Shown piece by piece: positions 1,480-52,674 of a stretch of DNA of 54,952 nt. Made by a program: the position numbers and the translations under genes. Below the pieces are notes generated by a model. It saw only the letters and a program-made list of their open reading frames with translations, was not told where the DNA came from and did not search any database. This stretch comes from Podarcis bocagei (lineage: Eukaryota). Numbering within the stretch: position 1 is the first letter of the stretch; each line of letters opens with the position of its first letter. The DNA is taken from NCBI GenBank assembly GCA_964188305.1, contig OZ076896.1; one strand, written 5' to 3'.

Positions 1480-2290
1480 GGGACGCGGGTGGCGCTGTGG
1501 GTAAAACCTCAGTGCCTAGGACTTGCCGATCGTATGGTTGGTGGTTCAAATCCCCGCGGCGGGGTGAGCGCCCATTGTTCGGTCCCAGCTCCTGCCCACC
1601 TAGCAGTTCGAAAGCACCCTTAAGTGCAAGTAGATAAATAGGTACCGCTTTATAGTGGGAAGGTAAACGGCGTTTCCGTGCGCTGCGCTGGTGCTGGCTC
1701 ACCAGCTGCAGCTTCGTCACGCTGGCCACGTGACCCGGAAGTGTCTTCGGACAGCGCTGGCTACCGGCCTCTTAAGCGAGATGAGCACGCAACCCGACTA
1801 CATGGAATTGGCAGAAATGACTGACTGGCAGAATCCGAGACCAGGGAGAAGAGTTGGTGAAAGAAGACTGGAAGAAATTTAAAGACTATTTACAGAAATA
1901 TTGTAAAATTAATGAATGTTAGAAGGATGTTGGATAGAAACTAAGGGGTTTCCAGCTATAATGCTTTAGGAGATACGAAAAAAAAAGGTTTATAAATGGG
2001 TAAAAGCTTAATGGTAAGGATTTGCTGAACTAGCAAATTGAAGTGGAATACAAAGAAGGGAGGTATGAGGAGGTCTGGGGAAATAAGTGTAAGGAAAATA
2101 TGTTATGGAAAATTATTTGTTTTTTAACTGTTTTTATGTTGTGATTTGTATTTTGTTTCTTTTTTTTTTCATTGTTATATTTTAAAAACTTTAATAAATA
2201 TCTTTTGGGGAAAAAAGAAGAAGAGATGAGCATGCAACCCCAGGGTCGGTCACGACTGGCCCGTATGGGCAGGGGTACCTTTACCTTTAC
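1480..2290 (+). mobile_element. Sauria SINE (Squam1) split by an L1 insertion (SINE parts 1480-1795 and 2223-2290)
   Basis: GGGACGCGGGTGGCGCTGTGG head, B-box GGTTCAAATCC, AAGTGCAAGTAGATAAATAGGTACC core, (ACCTTT)n tail. Confidence 0.92.
1796..2222 (+). mobile_element. 5'-truncated L1 3' end inserted in the Sauria SINE
   Basis: Encodes DYMELAEMT...EDWKKFKDYLQK, similar to the ORF2 end of the large L1; AATAAA plus A-rich tail; 18-bp TSD GAGATGAGCAYGCAACCC at 1778-1795 and 2223-2240. Confidence 0.92.
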
Positions 2291-39074: not shown

Positions 39075-39700
39075 GAGACCTGCCTTATACTGAGTCAGAC
39101 CATTGGTCCATATAACTCAGCATTGTCTACACTGACTGACAGCAGCTCACCAGGGTTTCAGGCAAGGTTGTCTCCCAGTCCTACCTGAAGATGTTGGGGA
39201 TTGCATCTGGGACCTTCTGCAACAGCAGCAAGAATATTATTGGCCCAAAAATGGAAGCAAGAAGAGTTACCGTCGATTGAAGAATGGAGGATGAAGCTAA
39301 TGGACTATGCAGAATTAGATAAACTAACAGGAAGGATTCGAAACTGGCGAGACCAGAAATTCACGGAAGACTGGAGTAAATTTATGGACTATTTGAAAAG
39401 TACCGGTAATTGTGAAGAACAGATGATGTTTGTAGGGTTGCAAGAAGTTTTGTGAGGAGTATTATTAGAAGTATTGTAAAAATGGACAAGGGGGAGGATG
39501 ATTTGTTAAGAGATGTAAAGGCAATCTAAAGTTAAGAAATGCATAAGAAGTGGTTAAAACGATGGATCATCAGAGGTGCTGATGGAAGTCCAAAAAGATT
39601 GTATAAGTGATAAGCTTTGTGGTACATTTTATAATTTATATGTTAAAATTAATAAAAAATTACCTTCTGCATGCAAAGCAGATGTTCTACCACTGAGCAC
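39075..39700 (-). mobile_element. Squam2-like SINE split by L1 (parts 39075-39221 and 39662-39700)
   Basis: CTGCCTTATACTGAGTCAGACCATTGGTCCAT ... GGGACCTTCTGCA|TGCAAAGCAGATGTTCTACCACTGAGC. Confidence 0.85.
39222..39661 (+). mobile_element. 5'-truncated L1 3' end (divergent lineage)
   Basis: TAARILLAQKWKQEELPSIEEWRMKLMDYAEL...; AATAAA; 10-bp TSD ACCTTCTGCA (39212-39221, 39662-39671). Confidence 0.92.
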
Positions 39701-44420: not shown

Positions 44421-45797
44421 ATTTAGTGAGTCATTGTAAGCTCTACCATGCAATCTTTAATTGTGTTGATGACACAAATTGATCATTTGAGGTCATTATT
44501 TCTGTGACTAAAATATATTGACCTTCTGAAGATCACTGACCTTTGACTATTACACAACTCAAACCATCATAGTGGTACTTTATTGAAGTCCACAATTCCA
44601 CTGTAATGCACAATACAGAACTTTGCTGGGAAATTTAGAATAATCTTTCCCTTTCTCCCAAACTCAGTCTTCCATTGAAAAAAAAAAAATGAACAGAACT
44701 GTGATTTTAACAAATATTTGAACCATGTCATTGTTTCAAATCATTTTTAAAATAAAAAAAATAAACACGGTCCAATTCTGAATATGAAACATTCTTTTCA
44801 AATAACTGAAGATAAGTTATCGTAGTCTTCATAGTTCAGAATATATTATTAGACCTTGCTTGCCCACAGATGTAGATAACAATATATTATGTAAAATGAG
44901 GTGGATGGCAATATTAGTCTTTCTCCTCTGCTGCAAGCATCTTTGCAAGAACACAAGAGATTTCTAAGGCATGGTCTATGGTATAAATTCTTAGAACTCT
45001 TCTCATGCACAGGTTTTGCATCTAGATGAGAGACATAAACATGTGAGCTGGGATGAGAGAATGCTCCATCAAATAATATGGATTTTTGGTTGTGTGTTTG
45101 CGGGGGGGGGGGGTAAATTAAGATGCTTGCAAGTAACCATTCTGTATTCTGCTAGGCAGGAGAAACACATTTTAAGATCATGATAAATGGATCTTGATAA
45201 ATGTACGCATTGCATGGAACGCAGCTCCTTTTAAAGTACAAATTACTGAATAATGCATGTCCCCGTGTGCTGAAGTTCTGCGGGACTTTTCTTTTTACAA
45301 GTATAGATGACCTTTTTTGTGAACGTGTGATGGATACGTCTGCGAATAAGACATCAGTCCCTTGTCCCCGCTACTGTTTTGTGTTGCAAAGCCAGTGTGT
45401 ACACAAGCGCAGGAGGACAGTTGTACACAGCAAAACGCAGAAGAGGAGTCTCAGCTGGCAATGATAAAACCTAAACCACACACATTGCAGATTACTTCCA
45501 TTAATCTCTTTTTGATTGCTGGAGTATTTATGTTGGGAACTCAGTTGAATATTTCATTCATGAGCTGCTGTGCGGATTTGATGGATTATTAGTTAATAGG
45601 AACTTTTAAAGTGCTAAGGCAGTACATGACCTTACTTAATTACCTCCGTGGTAAAATTGTTTATCTTTAATAACTGTTTTAATTGCTGTGAAAGTTGGTG
45701 GCGCATGTATCATATCTCAATATATATTTGTTAGACACACCACAATGATGCTTATAATATAACCTGTACAGCTGTAATTAAATGGGTATGTGCCTTG

Positions 45798-45821
45798 TGT
45801 GTGTGTGTGTGTGTGTGTGTG

Positions 45822-45847
<26 letters not shown>
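45798..45847. repeat. (TG)n(CA)n perfect 50-bp palindrome
   Basis: 25-nt TG arm directly abutting a 25-nt AC arm, centre GTAC. Confidence 0.92.
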
Positions 45848-45854
<7 letters not shown>

Positions 45855-46291
45855 AGGTTATTACTTCCTTGTTTGGTTCAGAACCTGATTGTTCTTTTAT
45901 TTCTTTGCAATATTTTCTTTCTGAAAGGGCAGATTTTCACAATATATATATATTTTTTTATAATAGTTTTTTATTGCTTTTTTTTCCAAGGTCAGAATAC
46001 ATCGTCAGTAACACAACAAAAGCGGTTTTACAGAAAGAAAAAAAGAAATTATAGAAGAAAATTCACTTTTTCAAATCAATTTTCATGATCAACCGGACTT
46101 CCCCACGTCCTCCATCCCCTGCTTTCTTTACAATAAAAATAAACAGCAAATTAATACCTTATTTCATATGTTTTTGTGCTTTCATTTGGTTATATAGTCT
46201 GCAATTTATACTTTTCTAGATCATAACTTGGTTTCCATCATTTACCAATCTCAATACTGAAGCATGTTTTTCCCAAAGGCTTAGCAAATTC

Positions 46292-48025
46292 TCAACATTC
46301 ATATAACTTATAGTGTTTTTGCAAATAGTCCTTAAATTTTTTCCAGTCCTCTTCCACTTCCTCTTCTCCCAGATCTCGGATTCTGCCTGTCATTTCGGCT
46401 AATTCCATGTAGTCCATCAGCTGCGAATGCCACTCTTCCAGCGTGGGTAACTCCTGTGCCTTCCAATATTTAGCTATAAGGATTCTTGCTGCTGTAGTTG
46501 CATATAAAAAGAAAGTTCTATCTTTCTTTGACACTCTCTGGCCCACAATGCCCAGGAGGAAGGCCTCTGGTTTCTTGTGAAAGGTGTACTTAAACACCTT
46601 TTTCAACTCATTATAAATCATTTCCCAAAAAGCCTTCACCCTCGGGCATGTCCACCAGAGGTGAAAGAATGTTCCTTCAGCCTCCTTACATTTCCAACAT
46701 TTATTGTCAGACAGATGGTATATCTTTGCAAGTTTAACTGGGGTCATGTACCACCTGTATACCATTTTCATAATGTTTTCTTTTAAGGCACTACATGCCG
46801 TGAATTTCATACCGGTGGTCCATAACCTTTCCCAGTCTTCAAACATAATGTTGTACCCAATGTCCTGAGCCCATTTTATCATAGCTGATTTAACTGTCTC
46901 GTCTTGAGTATTCCATTTAAGCAACAAGTTATACATTCTTGAAAGCACCTTCGTCTTAGGTTCAAGTAGTTCTGTCTCTAGTTTTGATTTTTCCACCTGG
47001 AAACCAATTTTTTTATCCTTTTTAAACACCTCTAGAATTTGGGCATAATGGAACCAATCTCGCACCTTTCCCTTCAATTTTTCAAAGCTCTGCAACCTCC
47101 AAGTGTCACCATCTCTTTCAATTAACTCACAGTATTTTGCCCAGCCACTCCCCATGTTACGTAGTTTAATGGCTTTAGCCTCCGTCGGTGATAACCACCT
47201 CGGGGTCTTACTTTCAAGTAAGTCCTTATATTTAGTCCAGACAATGAATAGAGCTTTCCTGACAATATGGTTTTTAAACAGTTTATGAAGCTTTACCTTG
47301 TCGTACCACAAATATGCATGCCACCCAAAAGCATTACTATGCCCTTCCAGATCTAGGACATCAGTGTTTTCTAGCAGAAACCAATCCTTCATCCAGCAGA
47401 AGGATGCAGCTTCATAATACAATCTTAAGTCCGGCAGGGCAAACCCCCCTCTTTCCTTTGCATCTGTTAGTATCTTAAATTTTATTCGGGGCTTTTTGCC
47501 CTGCCAGACAAACTTCGTGATATCCCTCTGCCACTTTCCAAAACATTCCACTCTGTCCACGATCTGGAGGGTTTGGAACAGAAACAACATTCTTGGCAAT
47601 ACATTCATCTTAACTGCTGCAATTCTTCCCGACAAGGAAAGTTTCAATCTTGACCAAGTTTCTAAGTCCTTTTTAATTTCCAACCAGCATTTTTCATAGT
47701 TATCTTTAAATAGATTCAAATTTCTCCCAGTCAAGTTAACCCCCAGGTATTTCACTTTTGTAACCACATTTAATTCTGTTTCCTTCTGGAACCCATCTAT
47801 TTCTGATGGTGTCAAGTTTTTTGCCAAAACCTTAGTTTATTGTTTGTTCAACTTGAATCCCGCCACCCGACCAAACTCAGAAATTAGTTCTAAGGCTCTT
47901 TTTGTACTGGTTTCTGGCTCCTGTAATGTCAAAACCAAATCATCTGCAAAGGCCTTCAATTTGTATTGTTTTTCTCCGACCTGTATTCCTTCCACCAGCT
48001 GATCCCTCCTAATCAGGTTAAGCAT
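46292..48025 (-). pseudogene. ORF2: L1 ORF2 C-terminal half (RT FADD, KYLG, CCHC knuckle) with one in-frame stop
   Basis: LKAFADDL, VKYLGV, ERGGFALPDL, CWKC...FHLWWTC; the 47837-48025 and 46292-47827 ORFs are in the same frame, separated by a single TAA. Confidence 0.95.
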
Positions 48026-48423
48026 AAGATGGGCTGCCTGGATACAAGTAACATCGGACTGCGGTAACTGTATATAAATACAAAGTTATATTGGGCTACT
48101 TTGTAGTGGCAAAAAAAAAAAAAGGAACTGTTGCATGCACCTTTGTCAAGAACCTTTATTCTCTGCAGTTAAAATTGAATGTGGAGGGTTCCCTGTTTTG
48201 GACTTTATTTGGCCTTTTTTTGGGGGGGGGGACTTAATAGTAGGAATTTTCCATCCTTCCTTCCTTCCTAACTTTTTGGGAGCTCCCCCTACTGGATTGC
48301 AGAACTATTAGTCTCTGAGAACTGCTGGTTGACTTGGAACTTTTTATATCTGGATGTTTACTATCTTTTGGATTGTTTCCCATGGGATTTACAATTTGAC
48401 CTTGACTCAGGGACAGCTGTGGA

Positions 48424-49482
48424 ATGAGTGGCGCAGCAAAAACAAGGGCTGGAAAGAAAGCAAAACAAACTGAACTTTTGCAAACAACTTTGCCTGTGCA
48501 GCTACGTAGATCGTCTGTTCCAATTGTGACAGGTCTGCAAGAAGGACAACCTATACAGCCACCTCTTGGGGAGATGGCTGCTGGAGGGTTAGATCCTGTC
48601 TCCAAAGAAATATTGGACCAACTGGCAGCATTGAATAAGAAAGCTGATGAACAGGCAGCTAGATTTGATGAACAAGCTGCTAAATTTGACCAGGTGACAG
48701 CTTCAATCAATAAATTGACAGACCAAGTCACGAAGAATACACAGGCAATAGGTAATATTGAAAAGACTACAACAGAAAATCGAAAACTAGTCGAGGAAGT
48801 CAATACAAAAGCAGACGAAAATAAAAAGAGGATAGAGGAATTAAGAGGAGAGGTAAGACCACTGAGTAGACAGGTTACTGAACAGCAAGCGTACCTGTCC
48901 CTGGCAGAACTGAAAAACAGGGAAAGCAATCTGAGGCTTAGAAATATTCCAGAACTAGAAAAAGAGGACTTGATTAGCTTCTTGACAACAGAAATATCCA
49001 AGTTCTGGGGATTGGCAGAAGAGAAGGACTTTAAGATCGTCACCGCCTTCAGATTAGGAAGAGTGGTCAAGAAGGATAAACCAAGAGATTGCCTGGTCAT
49101 TTTGAGATCTAAGCAAGAAAAGGATAACATACTCGGCCTGCACTTTAAAAATTCATTGGTGATACAGGGAAAGACGGCAGAAATCTTCAGAGACATACCA
49201 AAACAACTACTGGAGTTAAGAGCTACATATAAAGACCTAGCAAGCTTATTGAGAAACAACACAATCCCTTATAGGTGGGAATTCCCTCAAGGACTATCCT
49301 TTACCTTGAAAGGAAGGAAGGTAAGAATTAGAACAGCAGAGGAGCAAGAAAAGTTCCTAAACGACCACGGGGAGGACCTTCGGAAAGGAGTAGCAGGAGC
49401 CTGGCCACCTCCTTCGTTTGGCCTCAACCCGGTTCCACCTCCAGATACAGAAGACAAAGGAGACACTCCCACTGACAAATAA
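48424..49482 (+). CDS. ORF1: L1 ORF1p (coiled coil, RRM, CTD), intact 352 aa, inside the inverted segment
   Basis: Heptad-rich coiled coil, RESNLRLRNIPE, KPRDCLV, IFRDIP, YRWEFP; ends 11 nt before the ORF2 ATG. Confidence 0.92.
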   Translation: MSGAAKTRAGKKAKQTELLQTTLPVQLRRSSVPIVTGLQEGQPIQPPLGEMAAGGLDPVSKEILDQLAALNKKADEQAARFDEQAAKFDQVTASINKLTDQVTKNTQAIGNIEKTTTENRKLVEEVNTKADENKKRIEELRGEVRPLSRQVTEQQAYLSLAELKNRESNLRLRNIPELEKEDLISFLTTEISKFWGLAEEKDFKIVTAFRLGRVVKKDKPRDCLVILRSKQEKDNILGLHFKNSLVIQGKTAEIFRDIPKQLLELRATYKDLASLLRNNTIPYRWEFPQGLSFTLKGRKVRIRTAEEQEKFLNDHGEDLRKGVAGAWPPPSFGLNPVPPPDTEDKGDTPTDK

Positions 49483-49493
49483 ATTGATCCAGG

Positions 49494-51480
49494 ATGTCTC
49501 TGCAGCTTCTTAGTTGGAATATTCATGGCGCAAACTCTCCCGAGAAAAGGAAAAAAATCTTTCATATATTGAGAAAAGAACAATTGGACGTCATTTGCCT
49601 TCAAGAAACACATGTGACTAGGCTCCACAGGAGAGTGCTAATTAATAAGAGACTAGGCCAAGAATTTATTTCATCAGACAAGGTAAAAAAAAGAGGAGTA
49701 GTGATCTACGCAAAGGAGAGCCTAGTACCAAAATTGGTGTTTAAAGATGAACAAGGAAGAATTTTGGCGATTGAAATACAATCACAAGGAGAAAATTTTT
49801 TGATAGTTGGAATATATGCACCAAACGATGGGAAATCAGAATTCTATAAGAGGCTGCATGAGATAATGCTGGACCACATTGACTATACTAACATCATCTT
49901 GATGGGAGATATGAATGGGGTAGTCTCCACTTACATGGATAAGTCACAAAACCAAAATTTGAACAAGGACGGCAGACTTCCAAAGACTTTTTTTGAACTG
50001 ACAGACAATATGGATTTGATTGATATTTGGAGGACAAAGAACCCTCTAGGTAAGGAGGGAACATTCTTTTCTGAGGCCCACCTATCTTGGACAAGAATCG
50101 ACCAAATCTGGACATCTAGAGGACTGGCACCTAAGACAAAAAAAATAGAGATCTGCCCCAAAACTTGTTCCGACCATAACGCTTTGAAAATGGACTTGAG
50201 ACTCACACCAGCCGGATCCTTCAGATGGAGAATGAATGACCACTTGTTTAGAGATCAGGAGATCGTGAAGAAGGCCCAAAAAATGTTGAAAGACTATTTT
50301 GAAATAAATTTGAATACTTCGGTGGAAAAGAAAATAATCTGGGACGCGAGCAAAGCTGTTATGAGAGGGTTCCTGATACAACAGAACACTATTAAGAAGA
50401 AACTCTGGAATGGTAAAAAGGACAAGATTTTGGACAAAATAAGAGATGGAGAGAAAAAGCTGAGACTAAATCCAAAATCAAAAGAAGTCTTAAGAGAAAT
50501 AAAATTCTATCAAACACAATATACGAAATTGATAAATCAAGAAATTGAATGGAAAATTAAACAGATGAAACAAAGATCATTTGAATCGGCAAACAAATGT
50601 GGGAAGCTGCTGGCATGGCAGCTGAAAAAGAGACAAAAATTGAACTTTGTTACCAATCTGGAGGTTGAAGGAGAGTGTATTCAGAAACCAGAAGAAATTA
50701 GAAAGTGTTTCCAGAGATATTTTAAAAAACTCTATACCCAAGGACCCCAAGCAGAGACTGAAATAAATAATTTTTTAAAAAGTCATGGCCTGCAAAAGTT
50801 AACACAAGACAAACAAACAGCCCTGAACTATAAAATAACACAACAGGAAATTGAAAGTGCCATTCAGAACATGCAAATAGGCAAATCCCCAGGCCCAGAT
50901 GGACTTACCTCCAAATATTATAAGAAGGAATATCTGATACAGCCACTAATGGAGGTATGCAATCAGATTTTGGAAGGGAAGGGGGCACCAGAATCGTGGA
51001 AAGAGGCATTCATTACTTTGATACCAAAATTGGAATCTGAAAAGACTCAACTTAAGAATTATCGTCCCATCTCACTCCTAAATGTGGATTACAAAATTTT
51101 TGCTGATATTTTAGCAAACAGACTGAAAAAAGTTTTGAATGAAGTAATTCATAAGGACCAAGCAGGCTTTCTCCCTGGTAGGCATTTGTCTGATAACACT
51201 AGGAATATTATTGATGTTTTGGAGCTACTACAGACAAATATGAATACGAAAGCAGCCTTGATTTTCATAGACGCGGAGAAGGCCTTCGACAATATATCTT
51301 GGAAATTTATGAAGAAAAATTTGGAAGGGATGGGAGTGGGAAGGGCGTTTCAAAATGGTATCGAAGCAATTTATTCAGAACAAAAGGCTAAATTGATAGT
51401 AAACAGTGTGGTGACAGAGGAGTTTAAAATTGAAAAAGGGACACGACAGGGGTGCCCCCTATCACCCTTGTTATTTATCT
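49494..51480 (+). pseudogene. ORF2: L1 ORF2 N-terminal half (APE endonuclease and first RT motifs), broken by the inversion; reading frame runs on to 51581 in antisense 5'UTR
   Basis: SWNIHG, CLQETH, IYAPN, GDMN, TRID, SDH; KSPGPDG, YRPISLLN, DAEKAFD, GTRQGCPLSPLLF. Confidence 0.96.
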
Positions 51481-51935
51481 TTTCCGCTTTAGAAAAGTCT
51501 TTGCTCGATACTTTAAACAGAGCCGGAAGACTGACTTCCTTTTTAGCGTCTCCCGCTTTCAGCCAAATTTCGCCAAATTAGGTTCAAATAAAGCCTCAGG
51601 TTTCTTACTCACGAGTAAGTTGTTTCAGTTCAGTTGTTCAAGGAAGAAAGGTCAGCGCTGATCAGCAGCAGCCGCGCGGCTTCGCTTCCGCGGAAAGAGC
51701 GATGGATTCACAGCACCGCTACCCCCTCCACGTTCCGATACCCCTTACGGGGTCTCTTCTGCGTTTCCGAGGTCGCTTCTGGTGCCCGCCGAACCCCATG
51801 GCCACGGGCTCGCTCTACCCGTGGTTTCTCTAAGTGGGTCGTCGCTGTGCCGCAGCGCACGACCCTTTTCCGCGGAGCCCCTCTTCAGCAACTGAAGAGG
51901 ACCGCCATTGCTGAACGCGCCGCCTCCGGAAGTCC
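51481..51935 (-). promoter_or_regulatory. L1 proximal 5'UTR / internal promoter, CpG-rich
   Basis: Begins GGACTTCCGG (ETS-type CCGGAAGT) followed by AATGGCGG (YY1-like); high CpG density at 51660-51930; abuts the TSD. Confidence 0.8.
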
Positions 51936-52674
51936 AGATTTTCACAATATAGATGCCAAGTGGAGGCCGCTCAAAACTACCTCTGTATCACAATGGCCGA
52001 TCCATGTGGTAAGCCCTTTTATGTACATGATTGCTACATTCCCTCCAACACCCCAAAATCGGGACATGGGTTTCCCCCCACATGCTTCCATGCAAGTCAC
52101 ATGACCTACACAAGATCACGGAGCTCAAAAGACACACTTTTTCAGGGCTGGACCCTAAAACACATTTGGGGGGGGCACCACGTGAGATTGTGCCCCCCAA
52201 GTGCTTTTTTCAGGATGAGATCTTGCCATGCAATCACAAAATTGCAGTACCCCAAATGGCTGCCATGCTCTCATGCAAGAAAATATTATTTCATGGGACA
52301 CTTGTATTATATGTGGCTCGGTGGTTTTCCTTCAACGGTTTCCACCTCTCACCAGAGTGCTGTTGGCTCAACAGGCGCAGCACATCCATTTTTATTATTA
52401 TTTCCATTTAGACACCACTTACTATCAGAAGATCTCGAAACAGTTTACAACAGATAAACACTATGCACACATGATGATAAAAACCATGCCTAGTGACTTG
52501 CATAGTAGAACAGATGCAAAAACAATAAGCAATATCAATAAAACCAGAGAACATTAATAAGGCAGCATAGCAATATAACTTGTACAACTGTCTGACTCAG
52601 CATTGCACATGATCACTACAATCATTCACTACTTCAAACAATTTGTTGACCAGCTATTCAAACATAAGCCACTG

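Follow-up and report, generated by a model that had tools for sequence, protein, structure and literature searches.

A stretch of 54,952 nucleotides (nt) from Podarcis bocagei (contig OZ076896.1, GenBank assembly GCA_964188305.1; the whole stretch is the window below) carries a long interspersed element-1 (L1) at 45930–51951, and we found that it is one insertion in which the middle 3.45 kb has been inverted through two junctions, both of them non-homologous. We hold this description with high confidence. As an earlier reading of the letters by themselves (the sequence-only reading) had claimed, a single pair of target-site duplications encloses three L1 segments in minus, plus, minus order; this rests on an exact 17-mer repeat, the positions of the open reading frames (ORFs), Pfam matches and AT skew. 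The copy represents a rare form of the rearrangements known from L1 insertions, not a new kind of element.

Boundaries of the insertion

The frame of the insertion is the 17-mer CAGATTTTCACAATATA, which occurs exactly twice in a search of the window: at 45930–45946, where it coincides with the L1 3′ tail, and at 51935–51951, where it coincides with the first nucleotide of the L1. The letters flanking the two copies differ, and by our estimate ∼0.02–0.1 pairs of 17-mers lying ≤7 kb apart are expected by chance in a window of this size. The copies enclose 5,988 bp belonging to one minus-strand lacertid L1, and the window contains no N. The L1 begins with GGACTTCCGGAGG (minus strand, from 51934), and L001, a Logan contig of a related lizard L1 that was assembled independently, opens with GGACTTCCGGAGGCGGCGCG, the same letters that adjoin the duplication here. 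Because L001 begins with identical letters, the copy is not truncated at 51934 but starts at the family's genuine 5′ end, which bears out the earlier claim that an authentic 5′ end stands beside the duplication in normal orientation. On the other side, the element closes at 45947 with an A-rich tail whose last letters are a TA repeat. The duplication is present at both the true 5′ end and the 3′ tail, which is a feature of L1 insertion by target-primed reverse transcription.

Several further features of the borders were observed. The first-strand nick predicted from the two borders (45925–45955 and 51930–51960) is AATATA/GATG, which differs from the TTTT/AA type of mammals. Because the TA of the tail (45947–45965) overlaps that of the duplication, the border of the duplication is ambiguous by a few letters. 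The 3′ untranslated region (UTR) contains GGAAGTCC (46095–46110, minus strand), the exact reverse complement of GGACTTCC, the first 8 letters of the element (51927–51934, minus strand). A compound (TG)n(CA)n microsatellite lies at 45797–45856, 75 bp upstream of the insertion site.

Three segments of one L1

The segment order was seen in three ways: from the ORF positions, from the Pfam matches and from the AT skew, which changes sign at the same places. The three segments were compared separately with their relatives. Segment A (51482–51934, minus strand, forward) is the proximal 5′ UTR, comprising the first 453 nt from L1 nucleotide 1, and is ∼90% identical to positions 1–457 of L001. Segment B (48031–51478, plus strand, inverted) holds the distal 5′ UTR (48031–48423), which is ∼80% identical to L001 from position 617 onward, followed by an intact ORF1 of 352 amino acids (48424–49482) and the N-terminal part of ORF2 (49494–51478), which runs without a stop from the endonuclease into the reverse transcriptase (RT) as far as PLSPLLFI. 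Segment C (45947–48022, minus strand, forward) begins with the C-terminal part of ORF2 (46292–48022), which runs from the final third of the RT to the natural C-terminus. The ORF2 stop (46292–46294) is followed by the 3′ UTR and the A-rich tail with its terminal TA repeat (45947–46291). Translation revealed an in-frame TAA stop in segment C (47837–47839, minus strand) where relatives have lysine, and the open frame of the ORF2 end covers 46292–47827 (minus strand).

The Pfam matches agree with this layout. In the N-terminal part of ORF2 they cover positions 1–225 of Exo_endo_phos and positions 3–130 of RVT_1, and in the C-terminal part RVT_1 resumes at positions 146–186; the inverted piece holds the endonuclease and two thirds of the RT. 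With ORF1, a predicted APE-type endonuclease and a predicted RT, the element is a member of the L1 (LINE-1) group as judged from its coding content. ORF1 is 92% identical to a 352-amino-acid protein of Podarcis muralis, and the N- and C-terminal halves of ORF2 are 92–93% and 87–91% identical, respectively, to P. muralis proteins P0010, P0020, P0025 and P0043, which are the closest relatives of both halves alike. Identity to L001 is 84–97% in segment A and 76–89% in segment B, with no step at the breakpoint. The sequence-only reading had named segments from different L1 subfamilies as one of the findings that would speak against a single rearranged element. We saw no sign of this, and such a mixture was rejected in view of the common best relatives of the two ORF2 halves and an identity to L001 that shows no sharp step.

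Beside this layout, ORF1 has a 21-nt tandem duplication (48645–48686, plus strand; DEQAARF / DEQAAKF) that amounts to one extra coiled-coil heptad; the ORF1 of L001 has a single copy of the heptad and encodes 343 amino acids, versus 352 here. The distal 5′ UTR contains a run of 13 A (48111–48123) and a run of 10 G (48222–48231), and several contig joints that begin at 48232, beside the G run, are probably alignment or sequencing artefacts. Two short diverged pieces elsewhere in the window (1796–1924, 80%; 39222–39399, 70%) resemble the 3′ end of L1 ORF2 and are presumably old truncated L1 fragments.

The two breakpoints

ORF2 breaks off in segment B with PLSPLLFI, whose last codon is at 51478–51480 (plus strand), and restarts in segment C with LNLIRRD at 48022 (minus strand). 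Collinear P. muralis ORF2 proteins read PLSPLLFI-SVLEVL-LNLIR, and it follows from this comparison that SVLEVL, equivalent to 5–6 codons (15–19 nt), is missing here. The earlier claim that ORF2 is split at these two motifs with the loss of a few codons was therefore correct. Family contigs of two public runs (X1 and X2) depart from the window after 51478 and continue with TTCTGTCCTGGAGGT. In contrast, a proposed 6-nt microhomology (TTATCT) between ORF2 and the antisense UTR did not survive comparison with family copies, which read TTATTT (T, not C, at 51479), and at most 2–5 ambiguous letters remain.

At the junction between segments B and A (J1), three letters (CTT, 51479–51481) are assignable to neither side, since ORF2 homology ends at 51478 and UTR homology to L001 ends at 51482. 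At the junction between segments C and B (J2), 6–8 letters (48023–48030) belong to neither ORF2, whose homology starts with the codon at 48022–48020, nor the 5′ UTR, whose homology starts at 48031. A 5-nt inverted repeat lies on both junction edges (AAGAT at 48026–48030 and ATCTT at 51477–51481) and may be due to chance or to duplication of a few UTR letters. No inverted repeat longer than 5 nt was found at 48023–48031 or 51478–51482. Because there is no longer inverted repeat at the junctions, inversion by non-allelic homologous recombination between inverted repeats is excluded; ORF2 letters were also lost. A by-product of J1 is a fusion in which the N-terminal ORF2 frame reads into the antisense 5′ UTR, giving a 695-amino-acid open frame (49494–51581, plus strand) with a foreign tail of 33 amino acids.

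The second breakpoint in L1 coordinates lies within the 5′ UTR. Homology to L001 ends at 51482 in segment A and begins at 48031 in segment B, and between these points L001 contains a further 159 nt, to which nothing in the window is similar. L001 is a related L1 of a different subfamily (ORF1 84% identical), and L001, L002 and L003 were the only collinear relatives obtained; the 159 nt may set the two subfamilies apart or may have been lost at the junction, which places the loss at the 5′ UTR breakpoint anywhere from 0 to ∼159 nt. The seamless rejoining of the two 5′ UTR parts that the sequence-only reading had proposed was not borne out and may conceal a loss of this size. These three Logan contigs come from three runs of one project and start exactly at L1 nucleotide 1. 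They run through the 5′ UTR and ORF1 into ORF2 (1–2376 in L001) and look like an L1 transcript or a contig broken at a repeat border. No same-subfamily collinear copy was recovered by exact matching of ORF1, the best Podarcis ORF1 or two short ORFs in the UTR, by pattern scanning of metagenome contigs or by a protein search that started from the antisense ORF in the L001 UTR. Within the window, self-comparison revealed no other copy of the family.

Signs of an empty allele in public runs

Public sequencing runs were examined as Logan contigs, in which contigs of this high-copy family are at most ∼134 nt long. Ahead of 51935, the flank contig has 97 letters in run X15 (organism A) and 81 letters in run X17 (organism D) that lie off the L1 5′ end. 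These lengths are just what is needed to reach the CA repeat of the left flank, as an empty site predicts. In X1 (another sample of organism A) and X2 (organism B), the flank contig ends exactly at 51935. The flank contigs of these four runs start or fork at the first letter of the duplication copy at the L1 5′ end. A de Bruijn graph forks where filled and empty alleles coexist. Over the right flank, organisms A and B match the window letter for letter, and organism D has 3 differences in 215 letters. These data suggest that the insertion is polymorphic and therefore fairly recent. The sequence-only reading had called the L1 young: the signs of an empty allele in other samples speak indirectly for this, but an in-frame stop is already present in ORF2.

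Comparison with known L1 rearrangements

In twin priming (Ostertag and Kazazian 2001), the inverted cDNA lies against the 5′ duplication, usually with loss of 5′ sequence (summarised in PMC11702581 and bioRxiv 10.1101/2024.08.27.596794). Twin-priming junctions carried deletions in 22 of 32 cases and duplications in the other 10, of 1–10 bp (PMC11702581), and short deletions or duplications at the junction were also described in bioRxiv 10.1101/2024.08.27.596794. Our insertion resembles twin priming in that the 5′-most point of the inverted piece is joined to the forward 3′ piece, in the short gap at the presumed ORF2 priming site (15–19 nt, SVLEVL, between 51478 and 48022) and in its discrete, intact duplication. 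It differs in that the inverted segment is not directly at the 5′ duplication: a forward piece of 453 nt that starts from L1 nucleotide 1 (51482–51934) separates the two, and there is no 5′ truncation. This upholds the earlier view that a purely internal inversion departs from the twin-priming layout, as the segment that borders the 5′ duplication is complete and in forward orientation.

More complex insertions are also known. Among 3,598 insertions in human tumours, 23 (20 + 3) consisted of three segments and were ascribed to extra template switches (bioRxiv 10.1101/2024.08.27.596794). As in these 5′ switching and 3′ switching insertions, the lizard copy has three L1 segments with orientation changes within one insertion, but the tumour insertions are 5′-deleted and combine a 5′ inversion with an extra internal piece, whereas the lizard copy is full-length with a forward 5′ segment. 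In the GREM retrocopy, a third segment was added and the inverted piece is at the 5′ side (PMC11702581). It too is built of three adjacent, non-overlapping pieces, explained as pieces of one RNA by twin priming plus one switch, but its outer pieces are mutually inverted, whereas ours have the same orientation. Finally, a survey of 1,019 human genomes classed insertions with several internal breakpoints as non-canonical and left open whether they originated at or after integration (PMC12350158). Our copy shares the multiple internal breakpoints and the open origin of this catch-all class; the layout seen here was not described in that human survey, and here it is found in a lizard L1 and is base-resolved at one junction. 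Twin priming and the published switching variants are ruled out as they stand, since all of them place the inverted piece at the 5′ duplication.

Origin of the inversion

The sequence-only reading had left two routes to this structure, template switches at integration or a later inversion. They are still the right pair, and they are close to each other in probability. We tentatively favour a flip made during retrotransposition (probability about 0.4), through an accident like twin priming in which the second primer was something other than a chromosomal DNA end. The borders of the insertion, with an exact 17-bp duplication, the true 5′ end and the 3′ tail, form the frame of a single event. At J2 the inverted piece is joined by its 5′-most point to the forward 3′ piece, whose start is 15–19 nt from the 3′-most point of the inverted piece. 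The three-segment insertions described above, from human cells and tumours, provide a precedent for extra template switches. The junctions carry no inverted repeats able to drive a homologous inversion. The signs of an empty allele in X15 and X17 and the forks at 51935 in X1 and X2 suggest that there was little time for a second event.

In such an accident, a second cDNA would start inside ORF2 near PLSPLLFI and run back into the 5′ UTR, while the main cDNA from the 3′ tail would stall 15–19 nt short of the second priming site. The main cDNA would pair with the 3′ end of the second cDNA and copy it, as in twin priming, to produce J2. It would then go on to copy the initial 453 nt of the L1 RNA, as far as the cap at the true 5′ end, producing J1, and the 5′ end would be joined to the target in the normal full-length manner. 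In the simplest version, the L1 RNA would have been cut in the 5′ UTR, and the 3′ end of the severed 5′ fragment would be the second primer. This undescribed variant of twin priming, in which a 5′ fragment severed from the L1 RNA (e.g. by RNA slicing) primes and the first cDNA crosses an RNA–DNA chimera, is unlikely when taken as a specific claim. If an RNA fragment did prime, this would account both for the adjoining UTR breakpoints and for the forward, complete 5′ end at the duplication, and just one switch would be needed, as the chimera would be a continuous template.

Several points weigh against an origin at integration. This route draws on a process known to be error-prone, yet it requires a step that nobody has demonstrated, and to our knowledge no published integration model yields a forward–inverted–forward order with an intact 5′ end. 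The RNA-fragment primer is our own proposal. Breakpoints that pair at both ends are exactly the outcome of a plain two-break inversion of DNA, and the 5′ UTR breakpoint may have lost anything from 0 to ∼159 nt. If AAGAT/ATCTT is a duplication, it would imply overlapping UTR pieces, contrary to what a cut RNA predicts. The in-frame stop shows that the copy is not pristine, and J1 and J2 are taken from the assembled sequence.

The strongest competitor, itself short of even odds and ranked next, is a later inversion: a full-length L1 inserted, and breaks in its 5′ UTR and RT region were subsequently rejoined with the middle flipped, by end joining or replication-based template switching, with small losses. 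The pairing of the breakpoints in L1 coordinates (ORF2 gap 15–19 nt; 5′ UTR gap 0 to ∼159 nt depending on subfamily) is the hallmark of a simple two-break inversion and needs no special assumption. The small losses and few unassignable letters at both joints, without long homology, fit as well, and the in-frame stop means that the copy had time to gain it or inherited it. Internal rearrangements of mobile elements may indeed postdate integration (PMC12350158). On the other hand, an independent inversion of ∼3.5 kb that falls wholly within one 6-kb element has a low prior, especially if the insertion is still polymorphic, and the 15–19 nt gap at the RT breakpoint fits twin priming equally well.

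The remaining explanations have much lower probabilities. It is improbable that the L1 is collinear in the animal and that the assembler or chimeric reads turned its middle around. The family contigs are too short to check the internal junctions, and no listed run clearly contains this copy (word share ≤0.57), which leaves room for such an error. However, the element has neither Ns nor gaps, single long reads span 6-kb elements between unique flanks in modern assemblies, and the joints lie away from repeats and have lost letters instead of making a clean flip, which assemblers do not create. Slightly less probable still is a source copy that was already inverted, whose transcript, driven from the 453 nt that remain at the start of the 5′ UTR, would have been retrotransposed to this site in trans. 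The borders are like those of an ordinary full-length insertion (duplication, true 5′ end and 3′ tail), and a copy with a split, stop-bearing ORF2 would be unable to move itself. Nevertheless, trans mobilisation of defective L1 RNA is rare because of cis preference, the window has no second copy of either junction, and this explanation merely shifts the inversion event to another place. The alternating orientation could also come from two unrelated L1 pieces, that is, a deleted L1 into which a separate L1 fragment inserted in the opposite orientation, but we consider this very improbable, the least credible of the alternatives. The inner piece fills the outer gap to within 15–19 nt at ORF2, it has neither a tail nor a duplication of its own, and the ORF2 halves have common closest relatives; nested independent insertions were rejected on these grounds.

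Implications

How the two DNA ends and the RNA template interact as an L1 integrates is recorded mainly in copies with 5′ inversions, and here a natural, base-resolved, full-length copy in which just the middle is inverted fits neither twin priming nor the published switching variants. If the copy is a one-off later inversion, it is a mere curiosity. It would also be a warning to pipelines that assign each inverted L1 to twin priming. If such copies recur in lizard genomes, which have many young L1 lineages, they would show that the target DNA end is not the only possible primer of a second cDNA.

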